Shown here: positions 328 through 9,300 of the stretch, one piece after another
Layout: every line of letters starts with the position of its first letter
How positions within the stretch are numbered: the first letter of the stretch is position 1
From: Macrostomum hystrix
Lineage: Eukaryota; Animalia; Platyhelminthes
Direction: 5' to 3'
NCBI GenBank assembly: GCA_950097015.1
Contig: CATNEN010000011.1
Coordinates: forward strand, 2,232,001-2,296,000
Length of the DNA: 64,000 bases
Translations under genes and position numbers: made by a program
Notes under the pieces: generated by a model
The model's input: only the letters and a program-made list of their open reading frames with translations
The model's database searches: none
Told to the model about the DNA's origin: nothing

Positions 328-3300
328 GCAAGCTATGCTCATTCTGACGGAGCAGATCAACTCATTCCTAGCCACGGAGACTGGCCAGTCCCCAATGTCC
401 GTCGAAAAGGTGGCCCTCGGTTTTATTCGCGTTGCCAACGAATCCATGTGCCGGCCCATCAGAGCCCTGACGCAGGCCAAGGGTCACAACACCGGCCTGC
501 ACGCGCTGGCCTGCTTCGGTGGCGCCGGTGGTCAGCACGCCTGCGCCATCGCTCGAAGCCTCGGCATGTCGCGAGTCTTTGTGCACAAATACTCTGGAAT
601 TCTCAGCGCCTACGGCCTGGCTCTGGCCGATGTGGTGCACGAAGCTCAAGAGCCGTGCGCTCTGGAGTACTGCCCAGGTTTGACTTGAAATTGAGTCTTT
701 GTCTTTTATAGTAGTCTTTGTCTTTTTAATATTTCATTGTCTTTGCAATTAGTATTTTTCTTTAATATTGTCGTTTTCGTACATAGTTATCTTTGAATTT
801 ATGTTAGTCTTTGTCTTTCGAAGCAGTATTTGTCTTTCGAAACAGTCTTTATCCGAAGCAGTCTTTGTCTTTCGAAACAGTCTTTATCCGAAGCAGTCTT
901 TGTCTTTCGAAGCAGTCTTTATCCGAAGCAGTCTTTGTCTTTCAAACAGTCTTTGTCTTTCGAAACAGTATTTTTATTTTAAAAAGTCTTTGTCTTTTAA
1001 TACATTCTCGGATTCTCAACAAAGTCATTAATTTCATAAAAATGTCCTGACATTTTTCAATTTTTTTTCACATTTTTCCTCAGAAAATTTTACCACAATC
1101 GAAGATCGCTTTAAGCATCTCGAGCGCGAATGCTTCAACAAGCTGACTCGACAGGGCTTCGAGCAGTAAGATTTTACACATATTTTATTGCTCTAGCATA
1201 CTTAATTGCATGCATTAAAAGTTCGTTGTTAATTAAGGTTTTCACCATAGACAAAAAGAAAAAAATAATTTAATAGAACACAACGAAGCGCAAAACGCAT
1301 TATGAACAATCTGGTTGCTGAAAAAACCATTCGGAATTCAACTATGTCTAACAAGAACAATAAAAAAGAATCCATAAGCTTTGGTTCTAATCGACGATAT
1401 CGCTATTTTCCGACGGAATCCGGCCAATTACCGGCAACTTCAAAGCTAGCTGCACCGCACATACCAAAATCTGTCCATTGTCCAGCTGTACTGAATCCGT
1501 TCGGTCGGGATGACTACTTTCCATTTAAACCGGTTGAAGATGATGACTTCTGCTGGTTGGATAGGCAGATCAATAATAACTCCGGCGAGAGCAGTTCAAG
1601 AAAGATCGCCTCCAAGGAGGTTTCAAAACGCGAAGTTGAGAATTGGTTTTTTCTGTACTTTCGATTTCGTAGGGAAGGCTACCAGTCCATTGTTAACGCC
1701 ATCAGACAGTCAGCCGTAAATGAAAGCATATTCAACGAGGATAACATTGAAAAGTGGACTTTTAAGATGCGGTTTCGGATAAGAAAATCGGCGCCTTTGA
1801 AGGTAAGAGGTTCGATCCGTCCGCACCCCGGGTGTTTTATTTTGCCTTCATCCCCTCCACACCCGGGTGTTTTAATTGGCTTTCAACCCCTCCACAGCCG
1901 GGTGTTTTAATTGGCTTTCAACCCCTCCACAGCCGGGTGTTTTAATTGGCTTTCAACCCCTCCACATCCGGGTGTTTTAATTGGCTTTCAACCCCTCCAC
2001 AGCCGGGTGATTTAATTGGCTTTCAACCCCTCCACAGCCGGGTGATTTAATTGGCTTTCAACCCCTCCACAGCCGGGTGATTTAATTGGCTTTCAACTCC
2101 TCCACACCCGGGTGTTTTAATTGGCTTTCAACCCCTCCACACCCGGGTGCTTTAATTGGCTTTCAACCCCTCCACACCCGGGTGTTTTAATTGGCTTTCA
2201 ACCCCTCCACAGCCGGGTGTTTTAATTGGCTTTCAACCCCTCCACAGCCGGGTGTTTTAATTGGCTTTCAACCCCTCCACAGCCGGGTGATTTAATTGGC
2301 TTTCAACCCCTCCACACCCGGGTGTTTTAATTGGCTTTCAACCCCTCCACAGCCGGGTGTTTTAATTGGCTTTCAACCCCTCCACAGCCGGGTGTTTTTA
2401 TTGGCTTTCAACCCCTCCACAGCCGGGTGTTTTAATTGGCTTTCAACCCCTCCACAGTCGGGTGTATAAATTGGCTTTTAACCCCTCCACAGCCGGGTGA
2501 TTTAATTGGCTTTCAACCCCTCCACACCCGGGTGTTTTTTCCAATTTCTTAATGACCTTTTAAATATGGTGAATGAAACACACGTTGTGTATTTCTCTTA
2601 TTCCTCCGGCACACAGAGGGCCCTCATCGCCTGTTCGTCTCGTCTAGGTCTGGAATTCGATCCCGATGTGATATTTTGTTTGGACGGTTTCTATGGCGAC
2701 AGCGTTACGGGTCGTTTGCATAATTGCAACGAAGTTCCAAATCAGGTTGTCATAGCAACGAGAAGTTGTCGCGCTCTGGGCCTGATCAACGGCTGCTGTC
2801 TATTCGTTAGTCGCGCCTCCGCGAGTGAAAGAAAAAATGCCGCAACACAGTCTAAGCAGGATATGCTTGAGGTGTGCGATTTTGAAGAACCCGAGGACAC
2901 CATCGAGTCTGACGACGACGGCAATTTTGGCGCACTCCCGGGCGCCGGGAAGACATCAACTGACATTGCACCACAGCGGGTGTCTCAGAACATTGAGAAA
3001 TTCCCAAGTGACCAATCTTTATCTGAGCGTTCGTCAGTCGACTATACTATCGACCGGAGCTGTTCAGAAATTATTTCACAATGAGAAGAAGATGTTGATT
3101 TTAGTAGAAAGACGGGAGTGAACTAGTTCAGCAGAGTTTTATTTTATTTTATTTAAGAAACCTTCGAACCCAGTGCGTTTTCTTAGTATCATTTCTAGCG
3201 TTTATTAACTCAGTATCTAGTACCTGGCGTTTATCCTAGCTTAGTAATAGCAAGTGTACATGTCAGTGAAGTTTAAGTTTTTTAAGTACAAAGTGTGTTT

Positions 3301-6300
3301 ACTCGTGCTGCTAGCTTGTCTCTTCTCCGAGACTTTAATAATTGTTTATGCTTTTTGTGCTATGAATTTTGCAGTGTAGCATTAAAACTTATCATGTTTA
3401 AAAATCATGTAGTTGTAAAAGTTGTAAAAACTGTCAGGTGTAAAAAAGTGTCAGGTGTAAAAACTGTCAGGTGTTATAATTGTCAGGTATAAAACTGTCA
3501 GGTATAAAAACTGTCAGGTGTTAAAACTGTCACGTATAAAAACTGTCAGGTGTTAAAATTGTCAGGTATAAAACTGTCAGGTATAAAAACTGTCAGGTGT
3601 TAAAACTGTCAGGTATGAAACTGTCAGGTGTAAAAAGTGTCAGGTGTTAAAACTGTCAGGTATAAAAACTGTCAGGTGTAAAAACTGTCAGGTGTAAAAA
3701 CTGTCAGGTGTAAAAAGTGTCAGGTGTTAAAACTGTCAGGTATAAAAACTGTCAGGTGTTATAATTGTCAGGTATAAAACTGTCAGGTATAAAAAGTGTC
3801 ACGAGTTAAAACTGTCACGTATAAAAACTGTCAGGTGTTAAAATTGTCAGGTATAAAACTGTCAGGTATAAAAACTGTCAGGTGTAAAAAGTGTCAGGTG
3901 TAAAACCTGTCAGGTAATCGTCTCCCATTTCCCTCCCATTCTCCTATTCAACTCCAAAGGTCGCGCATCCGTTTTGAGCGCTATCTTCATCTGCGCTACG
4001 AGGGCACTGACTGCGCCGTTATGTGCCGTCGCAGAGACGTCGCAGACACTAACCTGGACGGCGACTACCTGGCCGTGTTCGTGAACAGATACCGCACGGA
4101 ATTCGGCTTCACGTTGGAGGGTAGGCGGGTCCTAGTCGACGATGTTCGCGTCCGCGGCGTCGCTTCCTCGGGCGCGGACGTTCCTGCTGGCCTTGAAGCC
4201 TTCGAAGAAGACGACGAAGCGATCGGGGCGGTGGCGCCGGAGCCAGTCGCGAATAATCAAGTGTACTTTGAAGAACAGGGCTGGCAGACGGTATGGGTCA
4301 GGATTTTCAAATCCCAAACTGTGAAGTTTAGAGTTGACTGCCAAACGGAATCGGGGAGTTTTTACAGATTTCTAATTAGGAAGAGACCCCGTATAAATAA
4401 AATATCTCAAATAGGGAAGAAATCTCAAAACGAGAAGAGATCCGAAAAATGGAAATAATCCCAAAAGGGAAGGATCCCAAAAAGGGAAGAGATGCTAAAA
4501 AGGGAAGAGATCCCAAAAAAGGAAGAGATCCCATATGGTAAAAAGATCCCAAATGGTAAAAAGATCGCAAATGGGAAAAATATCCCAATTGGGAATAAGA
4601 TCCCAAATAGGGAAGGCAACCCAAATGGGGAAAGATCTAAAATCAGTCAGAAATGCCAAATACAGAAGAGAACTAAAGTTAAGCAAACTGTCAGCAAATT
4701 TCGTCGCAATATTTTATTCCCCCCCAGGTGGGTGTCTATCGACTGGACAGCCTGTTGCCAGGCCAGTGCATAGAAGGGCCAGCAGTGGTGCTGGATCAGA
4801 ACAGCACGGTGCTGGTGGAGCCGGAATGGCGGGCCAGGCTAACTCGGCGCTGCGACCTTCTGATCAGTCGCAAGGCGTCCGCCGCCGCAGCTGCTGTCGC
4901 AACCGAGGTGCGCGAATCTGAGGTTCAGGTTGACAGCATCCAGTTGAGCATATTCTCGCATAGGTTCATGTCCATTGCTGAGCAGATGGGCCGGGTTCTG
5001 CAGCGGACCAGCATCTCAACTAACATCAAAGAGAGGCTGGACTTCAGCTGCGCATTGTTCGGCCCCGACGGCGGCTTGGTGGCCAATGCGCCACACATTC
5101 CTGTTCACCTGGGTGAGTCTGCCGCGATGTTTTAAATCCCTGAGCCAATGGGATAAGTTTTCTAGGAAAAATATGAATGACTTTAAATCCATGTTCTTAA
5201 ATCCTCAAGAAATAAAAATCCTTACATTTTAATTCTCAAGGAGTTAGAATCCCAATTCTTAAATCCTCAAGAAGTTAAAATCCCGATTATGAAATACCCA
5301 AAGTATAACAAATTAATCCTCAAAGATTTTTAATCCCCATTCTGAGATCTTCGGAGGTTTCGAATTCCGATTCCGAAATTCCCCATCCTTGAATCCTCAA
5401 GGATTTAGAAATCCCATTAAAAATCTTCAAGAATTTTAAATCCCACTCTGGAATCCTTAAGGATGTTGGATAAAATTTTTTAATTCCAAAAAATCTAATC
5501 CTTAAGAATTTCAAATTTCAATCCTAAAAAATTTTCCTAAATTCCTAAATCCTCAAGAATTCCCCATTTTCCGAAATCCCATTCAATCTCCCCAGGCGCC
5601 ATGCAGGAGACAGTTCGTTACCAGATGCAGCACTGCCAGATGCTGCCTGGCGATGTCATTCTGGCCAATCATCCGCGCGCCGGCGGCAGCCACCTGCCAG
5701 ACCTGACTGTCATCACGCCGGTGTTCCTGCCGCACTCACAGACGCCGATTTTCTTCGTGGCAAATCGCGGCCATCACGCCGACATCGGCGGCCGGACGCC
5801 CGGCTCCATGCCGCCCGACTCGCACAGCATCCTGGAGGAGGGCGCCGTGTTCCGCTCCTTCCACCTTGTCCGTGCTGGGAAATTTCGCGAAGCCGAAGTC
5901 ACCGAGGAGCTGATGGCTCCGGCTAAGCTTCCAGGCTGCTCTGGAACCAGAAATCTCGGCGACAATCTGAGCGACCTCAGGGCCCAGGTGGCGGCCAATC
6001 AGAAGGGCGTTGCCTTGGTTACGGCGCTAATTGAAGAGTACAGCCTAGGGGTTGTACAGGCCTATATGCGATTTATTCAGGTGAGTTTAATTGGAACTGC
6101 TGGAAATAGAGATGTTGTTAGAAATCACGACTTAAAGGTCGGAGGTTCGATTCCCGGCTCCACTGCCACAATTTGTGTCCTTTAGCAAGACACTTTGGCA
6201 AGCATTGCTTCAGTTCACCCAGCTTCCCCTATGTCCATGGAAATAGGGGAAGACACATTGGGTAGATAGGAGAAGACACATTGGGTAGATAGGAGAAGAC

Positions 6301-9300
6301 ACATTGGGTAGATAGGAGAAGACACATTGGGTAGATAGGGGAAGACACATTGGGTAGATAGGAGAAGACACATTGGGTAGATAGGGGAAGACACATTGGG
6401 TAGATAGGGGAAGACACATTGGGTAGATAGGGGAAGACACATTGGGTAGATAGGGGAAGACACATTGGGTAGATAGGGGAAGACACATTGGGTAGATTAG
6501 AGAAGACACATTCATCGGGTAGGTGGGGTAAGATACAGGGGGTAGACAAGGGAAAACAGGGAAGACGCTGTACCGTCCTGAACCCGCAGGCCAACGCCGA
6601 GACGGCAGTTCGCGACCTGCTTCGCCGAGTTGGCGCGGACGCCAAGGCTCGCACCGGCAGTTCTCGCCTTAGCTTCGCCGACAGTCTAGACGAGGGCTCG
6701 GATATTCGCCTAACCGTAGACATTGACTCATCAGCCGGCGGAGCCATCTTCGACTTCGCCGGAACCTCCCTGGAGAGTCACGGCAATCTCAACGCGCCAA
6801 GAGCTGTGACAATGTCCGCCCTGATCTACTGCCTCAGGTGCATGGTGCCTTACACAATACCCCTTAACCAGGGCTGCTTGGCGCCTATAGAGCTTCGACT
6901 GCCCGAAGGCAGTTTGCTGAGTCCGTCGGACGAAGCAGCCGTTGTTGGAGGAAACGTGCTCACCTCCCAGCGCATTGTGGATGTCATTCTCGGAGCATTC
7001 GGCGCCTGCGCCGCCTCACAGGGCTGCATGAACAATGTGACGTTTGGCGATGAGACCGTCGGATACTATGAGACTGTTGCTGGCGGCTCTGGCGCGGTGA
7101 GGCAACAATGAATCCCGTTGCTATGGCAACGCAGAGTTTAGGATTTTCTTTCTTTGTTCTTATTTTCATTGTTTTTTCTTAGAAACATGGATTCCATTCT
7201 TAGAAAGTCCTTCACAATAGCTGAAGTTTGTCAAGTTTTTTTATAGAAACTGGTTATCAAATTCGGCTTGAACAAATGATCATTATATTCCTAGAATAGT
7301 AATTTATTGCACCTGCCCCGATTGGGTCAGATGTGCAGCCGACAGCACAGCCACAGCTATTGCGCGGCGCATCTGAAGGCTGCGTACGGCTGTTCAGTCC
7401 ATGGACTGTGGGGACACTACACCCACCCTCAATTACCCCAGCTAATGCTGGTACCCATTTAACAGCTGGGTGAACTGTATAGCAGTGCAGAGTTAAGTTT
7501 CTTGCTAAAGGCTACAAATTGTTTCAATGGAGTCGGGAATCGAGCCTCCGACCTCCAAATCGTGAGTCAGACCCTCTAGCCACTAGAAATAATTTGCCAA
7601 TAGCTGCTAAAAAACTAAATCGATTGCGCCTAGTTACATACCTAGAAATCAGTTGCCATTAGCAACTGAAAAAAATAGTTTTTTCTTAGAATTAGTTGCA
7701 ATTATATTTTTAGAAATGTGTCGTCGTCTATAACAAAAGACGTTAATTATCGTTACATTCTAACAAAATTGGTTGCTATTGACAGCAAGAAACGCTTCCC
7801 GATCCGCTCGCATTGCTCAGGGCCCGAGCTGGCACGGTCGCAGCGGTGTTCACACCCACATGACCAACACTCGAATTACTGATGTTGAAATTCTTGAGAG
7901 GCGGTGAGTGCCTAAACTGGCTCTAATTTGGCTTCTAATTCTAGTTATTACGATTAAAAAAATCACAGTTTTCTTAAAACTATTTTTATCTTATCTCGAA
8001 ATGATTTTATTTCTTTGGTAATTCCATCTATTTAATTGAAAAATTTCCTGCATTGATTTTCAAATTTTTTTTTGTAATCAAGTGATAACTTCGCTCAGAT
8101 GGTGACCCGTCTATCACCCTCGATCACAGTAGGAAAGTCACCCTGTTTAATCGGGAAATCCATACAATCAATTGGAAAACCAGCGCAATTATTTAGGGGA
8201 AATCCCTATAACCCTTAGGAAATTCGATTAATTTTATAAGGAAATCCCTCAATTTCGTAGGTAAATCCCTCAAAAAGAGAAATTCCTCAATTATATCAGA
8301 AAACCACTCAATTTAACAAGGAAAGCCCTTAATTTGATATAGAACTCCTTCAATTAGGAAGGGAAATCCCACAATGTTATAGGTAAATCCCACAATTTTA
8401 TAAGGAAATCCCACAATTTTATAGGGAAATCCCACAATTTTATAGGGAAATCCCACAATTTTATAGGGAAATCCCACAATTTTATAAGGAAATCCCACAA
8501 TTTTATAGGGAAATCCCACAATTTTATAGGGAAATCCCACAATTTTATAAGGAAATCCCACAATTTTATAAGGAAATCCCACAATTTTATAGGGATATCC
8601 CACAATTTTATAAGGAAATCCCACAATTTTATAGAGAAATCCCACAATTTTATAGGGACATCCCACAATTTTATAGGGAAATCCCAATTTTTTTAGGGAA
8701 GTCACATAATAGTATTGGCAAATCCCTCAATTGTATTCGGAAATCTCAGCTTAATATTTTAGAAAAAAATCGCTGAATTTACGGAAGTCTTTCAATTGTG
8801 TTGGAAAATCCATCATTTTTATAGGGAAATACTAAAATTTTACTTGGAATAGGGAAATCCTCAATTTTACTAGGAATAGGGAAATCCCAAATTTTTTCTA
8901 GGATTAGGGAAATCCTCAATTTTATAGGGCAATCCCTTTACTCCTTAGCTACCCGGTGATCGTGGACCAGTTCTCCCTCTGCCCCGGCACCGGAGGTCGC
9001 GGCCAGTACAACGGCGGCGACGGCATCTTGCGAGTGCTGCGCTTCCGCAAAGATCTCACCCTGTCTGTGCTCACCGAGAGGCGAGTTCACGCGCCATACG
9101 GACTCAAGGGTGAGTCCTTATTTTGCGATTTTGGACGCAACATTTCGATCGAAACAGTGAAAAGTTACGCTAGAAAAAAACGCTAGTGCATTTTTCCGTG
9201 AAAATCTGCCTAGTTAATAATTTTTCCAAGAAACAAAGTGTCCCGTCGTTCTTCTTCTAGTGGTCTCTGTGAAACAACAACTCTCCAACACTTCCTTCCT

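Follow-up and report, generated by a model that had tools for sequence, protein, structure and literature searches.

The DNA analysed here is a stretch of 64,000 nucleotides from the flatworm Macrostomum hystrix (assembly GCA_950097015.1, contig CATNEN010000011.1, positions 2,232,001 to 2,296,000 of the forward strand), referred to below as the window. Its first kilobases carry exons of a gene for 5-oxoprolinase (OPLAH) and, inside one intron of that gene and on the same strand, two open reading frames (ORFs) that we assign to a single two-exon gene encoding a divergent SUMO-like protein. The features on which this assignment is built are listed here; the positions of secondary-structure elements in the two exons were transferred, through the family alignment A2, from AlphaFold2 (AF2) models of two relatives.

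335-676, + strand: host exon with Hydantoinase_A (Pfam match, 9e-29)
1083..1165, + strand: host OPLAH exon upstream of the nested gene, ending in ..GAGCA before GTAAGA, phase 2
1166..3959, + strand: host intron, 2794 nt, GT..AG, phase 2, containing the whole nested gene
1302..1802, + strand: coding exon 1 of the nested gene, 167 codons, backed by the ORF, the paralogues and the orthologue P0008; it encodes an N-terminal region with short conserved motifs, then beta1, a two-helix insertion, beta2 and the start of alpha1, the SUMO-like domain beginning at about 1638
1803..2616, + strand: intron of the nested gene, 814 nt, GTAAGA..CACAG, phase 0, its junction backed by intronless paralogues
2617..3084, + strand: coding exon 2 of the nested gene, 155 codons and a stop at 3082-3084, backed by the ORF, the paralogues and the orthologue; it encodes the rest of alpha1, beta3 with a DGFYG motif, a long insertion loop and beta5 (about 2797-2814), then a C-terminal helix (about 2818-2871), an acidic stretch (about 2878-2919) and the tail

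A two-exon gene nested in a 5-oxoprolinase intron

Besides the Hydantoinase_A exon, the host is identified by the two exons that flank the nested gene: the translation of the exon at 1083..1165 shares 59% identity with residues 1-27 of the Macrostomum lignano model P0008, and the next exon, starting at 3960, is 70% identical to the M. lignano OPLAH model P0017. The nested ORF and its candidate poly(A) signal (1302-3386) lie wholly inside the host intron, host exons ending at 1165 and resuming at 3960. In M. lignano, models P0008, P0011 and P0017 likewise hold nested-gene sequence between homologues of the same two host exons, indicating that the nesting predates the split of the two species. 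These three entries (UniRef A0A1I8FDV8, A0A1I8IZ64 and A0A1I8JR28) are automatic models in which OPLAH exons are fused to the nested gene or alternate with it; they bear unrelated names such as 'HELICc2 domain-containing' and 'Decapping nuclease', and look chimeric or faulty.

The composition of the nested gene differs from that of its host, with a GC content of 0.43 and 0.50 in its two exons (0.46 and 0.50 at third codon positions, GC3) versus 0.61-0.62 (GC3 0.73) in host exons. An earlier reading of the sequence alone had proposed a gene nested in an OPLAH intron on the same strand, AT-richer than its host and therefore perhaps a later insertion. Host, strand and AT-richness all hold, and the comparison with the sister species that it had called for places the orthologue between the same two host exons; the insertion itself is not recent, since M. 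lignano has the same nesting.

The two ORFs lie on the + strand at 1302..1910 (202 residues to the first stop, at 1908-1910) and 2506..3084 (192 residues, stop at 3082-3084), separated by a tandem array:

1828..2538, no strand: 35-bp minisatellite, 20.3 copies, 95% matches (Tandem Repeats Finder)

Direct reading shows a GTAAGA donor between 1802 and 1803, where TTGAAG is followed by GTAAGAGG, and an acceptor between 2616 and 2617, where TTTCTCTTATTCCTCCGGCACACAG, a pyrimidine-rich tract ending in CACAG, precedes AGGGCC. Both sites are in phase 0 in the frames of the two ORFs, and joining them yields 167 + 155 = 322 codons, with a junction that reads ..SAPLK followed by RALIAC... The layout that the sequence-only reading had described, namely two ORFs split by a 35-bp minisatellite, a phase-0 donor at 1803 and a pyrimidine-rich phase-0 acceptor at 2617, is thus found in the ORF list, the repeat scan and the letters themselves.

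Intronless paralogues confirm the splice junction

Each exon was searched separately against the assembly from which the window comes (220,453,370 bases, 42 contigs), and naturally contiguous paralogues and database proteins stood in for the joined product. Exon 1 found paralogues with E values from 1e-27 to 2e-9 and exon 2 from 9e-24 to 3e-9, both exons matching the same set of loci. In the paralogues on contigs 39, 31, 1 and 3 (C39, C31, C1 and C3), the exon 1 and exon 2 matches fall on adjacent codons of a single uninterrupted ORF, and in a multiple alignment (A1) the end of exon 1 of the window and the start of exon 2 occupy consecutive columns, with neither gap nor overlap. The M. lignano orthologue P0008 reads through the equivalent junction, ..SSPLK and then TALVAC... 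Moreover, the M. lignano models P0008 and P0010 share their sequence up to ..SSPLK and then part, P0008 going on with the exon 2 homologue, which places a donor at the same point in that species too. Because the two halves are co-linear in intronless paralogues and the M. lignano models diverge right after PLK, we regard the splice from 1802 to 2617 as confirmed by comparison, without RNA. The argument of the sequence-only reading, that a SUMO-like motif formed only upon splicing speaks for a real gene, is vindicated by the same two observations.

The search for paralogues elsewhere in the genome, also called for earlier, gave at least seven loci for each exon. Because each half matches this many loci, at E values of 1e-27 to 1e-9, and because the halves abut in intronless copies, the pair of ORFs is far beyond what chance would produce. 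Chance ORFs were indeed ruled out by the paralogues and by the M. lignano orthologue.

A family restricted to Macrostomum and conserved in its domain

A family profile run on the M. hystrix genome recovered about 14-15 loci, some of them with stops (C39:6755k, C39:11599k and C41). In a profile search of 1.84 billion representatives, which recovered P0008, and in word-based searches, all relatives came from M. lignano, plus one Logan contig. The M. lignano homologues (BOX15_Mlig010594g3, Mlig022411g1, Mlig022324g1 and others) match the family profile with E values from 1e-134 to 1e-10 and are publicly listed as uncharacterised or hypothetical, one being automatically labelled 'Rad60-SLD domain-containing protein' in UniProt (SLD, SUMO-like domain). 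No paper came up in literature searches for Macrostomum together with SUMO-like or for the identifiers of six M. lignano genes. A transposon-borne ORF found no support: neither Pfam on the family ORFs nor the family profile revealed a transposase or reverse-transcriptase domain, and the M. lignano copies are annotated at separate loci.

Homology to the family is significant over both halves of the window gene. P0008 is 49% identical to exon 1 as a whole, rising to about 67% in its last 54 residues; for exon 2 the orthologue is 76% identical over residues 2-46 and 52% over beta5, the helix and the tail. The domain is therefore conserved at 67-76%, comparable to the host enzyme exons (59-70%), and the N-terminus and tail are much less so. 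The window copy also retains all the near-invariant residues of the family: the R of YFR, WT, R-x-G, DGF-G and P. Because the domain is conserved like host exons and these residues are kept, with a less conserved N-terminus and tail, this pattern argues for a constrained protein and not a decaying copy. A silent or decaying duplicate, whose frames stay open by chance, might have been suspected from the stops at several other family loci (C39:6755k, C39:11599k and C41, as above) and from a GC3 that is low compared with the host. However, both exons are open over all 322 codons and flanked by canonical splice signals, every near-invariant residue is in place, and the orthologue sits in the same M. 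lignano intron with its domain conserved to the degree just given; a pseudogene is highly improbable.

Two further observations concern the N-terminal part. In the exon 1 part upstream of the domain (1302-1640), short motifs stand in an otherwise predicted-disordered region and are kept in the copies of the window, of contig 7 and of contig 3 as well as in their M. lignano orthologues; they include R-R-x-R-Y-F and [HY]-[VI]-P-x-S-[VI]-x-C-P..L-[NS]-P. The contig 39 paralogue (C39:5,775,476-5,776,812) possesses an upstream coding exon (503-931 and 1072-1839 in locus coordinates), confirmed by the M. lignano protein P0001 (372 residues), so the N-terminal exon structure differs among family members.

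The domain adopts a predicted SUMO-like fold

Pfam gave no relevant match for the two exons separately, for four paralogues of the same genome or for ten M. lignano members, and phmmer of exon 2 alone against PDB sequences returned no match. When the family profile (A2) was compared with all PDB sequences, SUMO or Smt3 chains made up 59 of the 60 best matches listed, the best being a di-SUMO-2 chain with an E value of 7e-5. The stretch that aligns is the very motif lying across the splice junction, with the beta5 region also co-linear. A protein-language-model search, used as a lead only, placed a Rad60-SLD cluster first, at 0.87.

Predicted structures gave a clearer assignment. Of the complete natural relatives, P0005 is the closest; it is the M. 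lignano orthologue of the contig 7 paralogues, and its AF2 model has a predicted local distance difference test score (pLDDT) above 90 over residues 140-285. Foldseek on this model returned almost only SUMO chains, with template modelling (TM) scores of 0.74-0.86 on target and SLD2 of NIP45 also among the matches, and VIA-align superposed it on SUMO-2 with a Z of 8.9 and a root-mean-square deviation (rmsd) of 1.4 Å over 76 of the 76 SUMO-2 residues. The contig 1 paralogue, with no intron in the part that encodes its domain, yielded a second AF2 model of the same topology. In a search of 48,161 chains with this second model, independent of Foldseek, SUMO took ranks 1-13 (Z 10.4-8.7, 19-23% identity), NFATC2IP reached Z 8.6, ubiquitins Z 8.5 at most with 7-10% identity, and Rad60 SLD2 Z 7.9. 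Across models, superposition on SUMO gave Z 8.9-10.4 and rmsd 1.3-1.5 Å over 73-77 residues. Since SUMO chains outrank the other ubiquitin-like folds in both Z and identity, these models point to a domain that is SUMO-like rather than generically ubiquitin-like in the window protein as well. Each of the two models holds one beta-grasp domain, the remainder being low-confidence or helical.

No di-glycine occurs anywhere in exon 2, and no family member has one within about 30 residues after beta5. Because a helix replaces the di-glycine tail at this point, the protein, judged from its sequence, could not be processed and conjugated like SUMO. The C-terminus of the window protein is acidic, and the corresponding region is low-confidence in the models and predicted to be disordered in relatives. 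The sequence-only reading had posited a SUMO-like segment of the Rad60-SLD type, devoid of a terminal di-glycine and ending in an acidic disordered tail. The SUMO-like segment finds support in the predicted structures of relatives and, weakly, in the profile search, and the missing di-glycine and acidic tail are both there, the disorder by prediction in relatives; of the Rad60-SLD type, the divergent SUMO-like fold stands, but membership in Rad60-SLD is undemonstrated, the Pfam Rad60-SLD and ubiquitin families being unmatched.

With SUMO-2, Smt3 and SUMO-1 the family shares the beta-grasp fold across the entire SUMO core, the sequence pattern of beta2-alpha1 and, as short motifs, R-x-G where alpha1 ends, F-x-x-D-G following beta3 and, at beta5, G-x-x-x-[GD]-x-x-I/L-F/x-V. 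Where SUMO has the acidic residue of F-[DE]-G, the family has the invariant D of DGFYG. Unlike SUMO, the family has a helix and an acidic tail after beta5 instead of a C-terminal di-glycine, a two-helix insertion of about 30 residues in the beta1-beta2 hairpin, a loop of about 20 residues before beta5 and an N-terminal extension of 110-140 residues; identity to SUMO is about 20%, with no Pfam match. Rad60, Esc2 and NIP45 (NFATC2IP) resemble the family in carrying a non-conjugatable SUMO-like domain inside a larger protein, with identities of 23% for the ubiquitin-like domain of NFATC2IP (Z 8.6) and 18% for Rad60 SLD2 (Z 7.9). These proteins differ in that they carry two tandem C-terminal SLDs and match PF11976, whereas the Macrostomum family has a single, insertion-bearing domain, does not match PF11976 and is found in Macrostomum only. 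The M. lignano members possess the same domain, the same insertions and the same near-invariant residues. Compared with other Macrostomum members, the window copy stands out by its nesting in sense in OPLAH and by a beta2/alpha1 intron swollen by a minisatellite, most paralogues being intronless there.

Expression of the nested gene

An in-frame stop (1266-1268) lies upstream of the ATG at 1302, and the 135 bases between the host donor and this ATG have a GC content of 27%. Two candidate signals border the gene:

1275..1276, + strand: candidate acceptor AG with a weak pyrimidine tract; no other AG occurs from the in-frame stop (1266-1268) to the ATG
3381..3386, + strand: candidate poly(A) signal ATTAAA, the only candidate between the stop codon and the next minisatellite (pattern scan)

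Expression could proceed from a start of the gene's own in the 135-bp AT-rich upstream stretch or by spliced-leader (SL) trans-splicing, which concerns 10-21% of M. hystrix genes (PMC10468722). From its sequence, the AG at 1275-1276 could serve as acceptor in SL trans-splicing or, alternatively, in a cis join with the host exon that ends at 1165; such a join would be in frame with the nested ORF. The two ORFs may then be alternative terminal exons of the 5-oxoprolinase gene, not (or not only) an independent gene, and their product would be a shortened enzyme continued in frame by the SUMO-like protein. Consistent with this, the host exon ends in phase 2 and the only AG after the upstream stop restores the frame of the nested ORF exactly, P0008 opens with the homologous host exon fused in frame, P0011 and P0017 mix both genes, and a separate transcript-based M. 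lignano orthologue was not found. By contrast, a frame match arises by chance in one case out of three, the acceptor tract is A-rich and pyrimidine-poor, gene predictors routinely fuse nested genes of the same strand, and the M. lignano models are visibly faulty (they lack a start codon, one skips beta5 and one has frameshifted stretches). All other family members stand alone at unrelated loci, with their own N-termini aligning from near the window ATG. We hold such alternative terminal exons to be distinctly unlikely and retain an independent nested gene.

Minisatellites and intron position

The 35-bp minisatellite fills 711 of the 814 bases of the nested gene's intron, leaving 25 + 78 unique bases. 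The only related array in the genome is inverted, about 1.65 kb long and 74-77% identical, and lies 2.2-3.8 kb upstream (contig 11 (C11), 2229991-2231644, minus strand), 0.4-2 kb before the first base of the window and presumably in an upstream OPLAH intron. In the pre-mRNA this array and that of the nested gene's intron could pair and bracket host exons together with exon 1 of the nested gene. The host intron contains a second array:

3423-3915: second minisatellite in the host intron, 16-bp period

Nearly all introns in the first 8 kb possess a minisatellite of their own, with periods of 16-35 bp (163-296, 694-997, 3423-3915, 4404-4632 and 6243-6512). Minisatellite-filled introns thus look like a genome-wide habit and not a peculiarity of the nested gene.

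Phase-0 introns occur near the beta2/alpha1 junction in three paralogue lineages, each at a codon boundary of its own and all within five codons of that junction. Taking the window intron as position 0, that of contig 34 lies at -4 codons and that of contig 7 at +1 codon. The contig 34 intron, four codons upstream, is filled with a minisatellite (1731 to about 2624 in locus coordinates), and the intron of the contig 7 tandem pair, one codon downstream, is 141 nt long (GTAAGC..CCAG, 1359 to 1501 in locus coordinates). Paralogues C39a, C1, C3 and C31 have no intron near this junction, and two of the three introns there are filled with unrelated minisatellites. These introns reflect either sliding of an intron or repeated gain at a hot spot.

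A putative non-covalent SUMO mimic

We consider it probable, though well short of certain, that the locus is a genuine two-exon gene, nested in sense in the 2.8-kb 5-oxoprolinase intron, whose non-conjugatable SUMO-like product acts as a non-covalent SUMO mimic. Within this explanation, the gene model, the nesting and its conservation, the membership in the family, the fold of two relatives and the absence of a di-glycine are established here. In the 322-residue product, a poorly ordered N-terminus, in which a few short motifs are conserved, would precede a single divergent SUMO-like beta-grasp domain and an acidic tail, and what is known of SUMO suggests that the protein would mimic SUMO non-covalently. 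In SUMO, beta2 and alpha1 form the groove that binds SUMO-interaction motifs (SIMs). Since beta2 and alpha1, and hence the SIM groove, form the segment that most resembles SUMO, and the hallmarks R-x-G and F-x-x-D-G accompany it, the protein would most likely bind SIM-bearing proteins, the SUMO-conjugating enzyme (E2), or both, by analogy with the SUMO-like domains of Rad60 and NIP45.

Several observations weigh against this explanation. PF11976 (Rad60-SLD) and PF00240 (ubiquitin) were unmatched in every member tested, even at E values up to 1-10, and single SUMO chains matched the family profile with E values of 0.02-0.1 only. The two modelled relatives are 42-48% and about 30% identical to the window exons, so that the fold reaches the window protein by homology. 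The two insertions could mask SUMO interaction surfaces, and the suggested SIM or E2 binding draws on sequence resemblance and on general knowledge of SUMO. In two recent contig 7 (C7) duplicates, the ratio of non-synonymous to synonymous substitution rates (dN/dS) is about 1.2-1.4, on only 15 and 26 changes, too small a basis for interpretation and with no bearing on the window copy, and these few changes reveal no sign of purifying selection there. Finally, a word search with P0008 returned three automatic UniRef models only and no NCBI (PAA) model based on transcripts; for the direct orthologue, M. lignano offers automatic models alone, confined to UniRef and fused to or interleaved with OPLAH exons.

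The gene could also be real and its domain a true beta-grasp while standing outside the SUMO system, as a lineage-specific interaction module with partners unrelated to SIMs, Ubc9 or SUMO proteases. The identity of about 20% to SUMO and the lack of a Pfam match would fit this explanation, as would the two large insertions, the added C-terminal helix and an expanded, genus-restricted family whose recent duplicates have dN/dS near or above 1, features more typical of fast-evolving lineage-specific functions than of the core factors of the SUMO pathway. Yet conservation with SUMO is highest precisely in the groove segment (beta2/alpha1), where basic residues alternate and the hallmarks R-x-G and D-G are found, and SUMO chains outrank every other ubiquitin-like fold in Z and identity. 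A role outside the SUMO system is in our view unlikely, though it deserves serious consideration.

A more elaborate form of the SUMO mimic involves the region preceding the domain. About 30 residues before it lies a conserved, acidic-flanked F-x-W-[LC]-D motif, EDDD-FCWL-D in the window, which is a predicted short beta-strand in the AF2 models of both relatives and a higher-confidence island in an otherwise disordered region. Members of the family might be auto-inhibited SUMO decoys, in which the F-x-W motif docks in cis, like a SIM, on the beta2 edge, and the expanded mimics might compete for SIM readers, Ubc9 or SUMO-type proteases. The latter could include the Ulp1 domains of the many Foldback/Mutator transposases of this genome. 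We offer this scenario as a speculative and improbable one.

The fold assignment, derived from predicted structures, is the main solid result of this work. For method, the case illustrates that intronless paralogues can take the place of RNA in verifying a splice predicted from raw sequence. Elsewhere, SUMO-like domains are known from a small number of conserved proteins of genome stability, among them Rad60, Esc2 and NIP45; what is new here is a single-domain form with insertions, restricted to one genus. Macrostomum is tractable as a model, RNA interference and transgenesis being in use in M. lignano. Its SUMO-like family, found in this genus only, comprises about 15 proteins that carry insertions, are non-conjugatable and go unrecognised by Pfam. 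If true, such a lineage-specific expansion of SUMO-like domains would be an uncommon means of tuning or subverting the recognition of SUMO.

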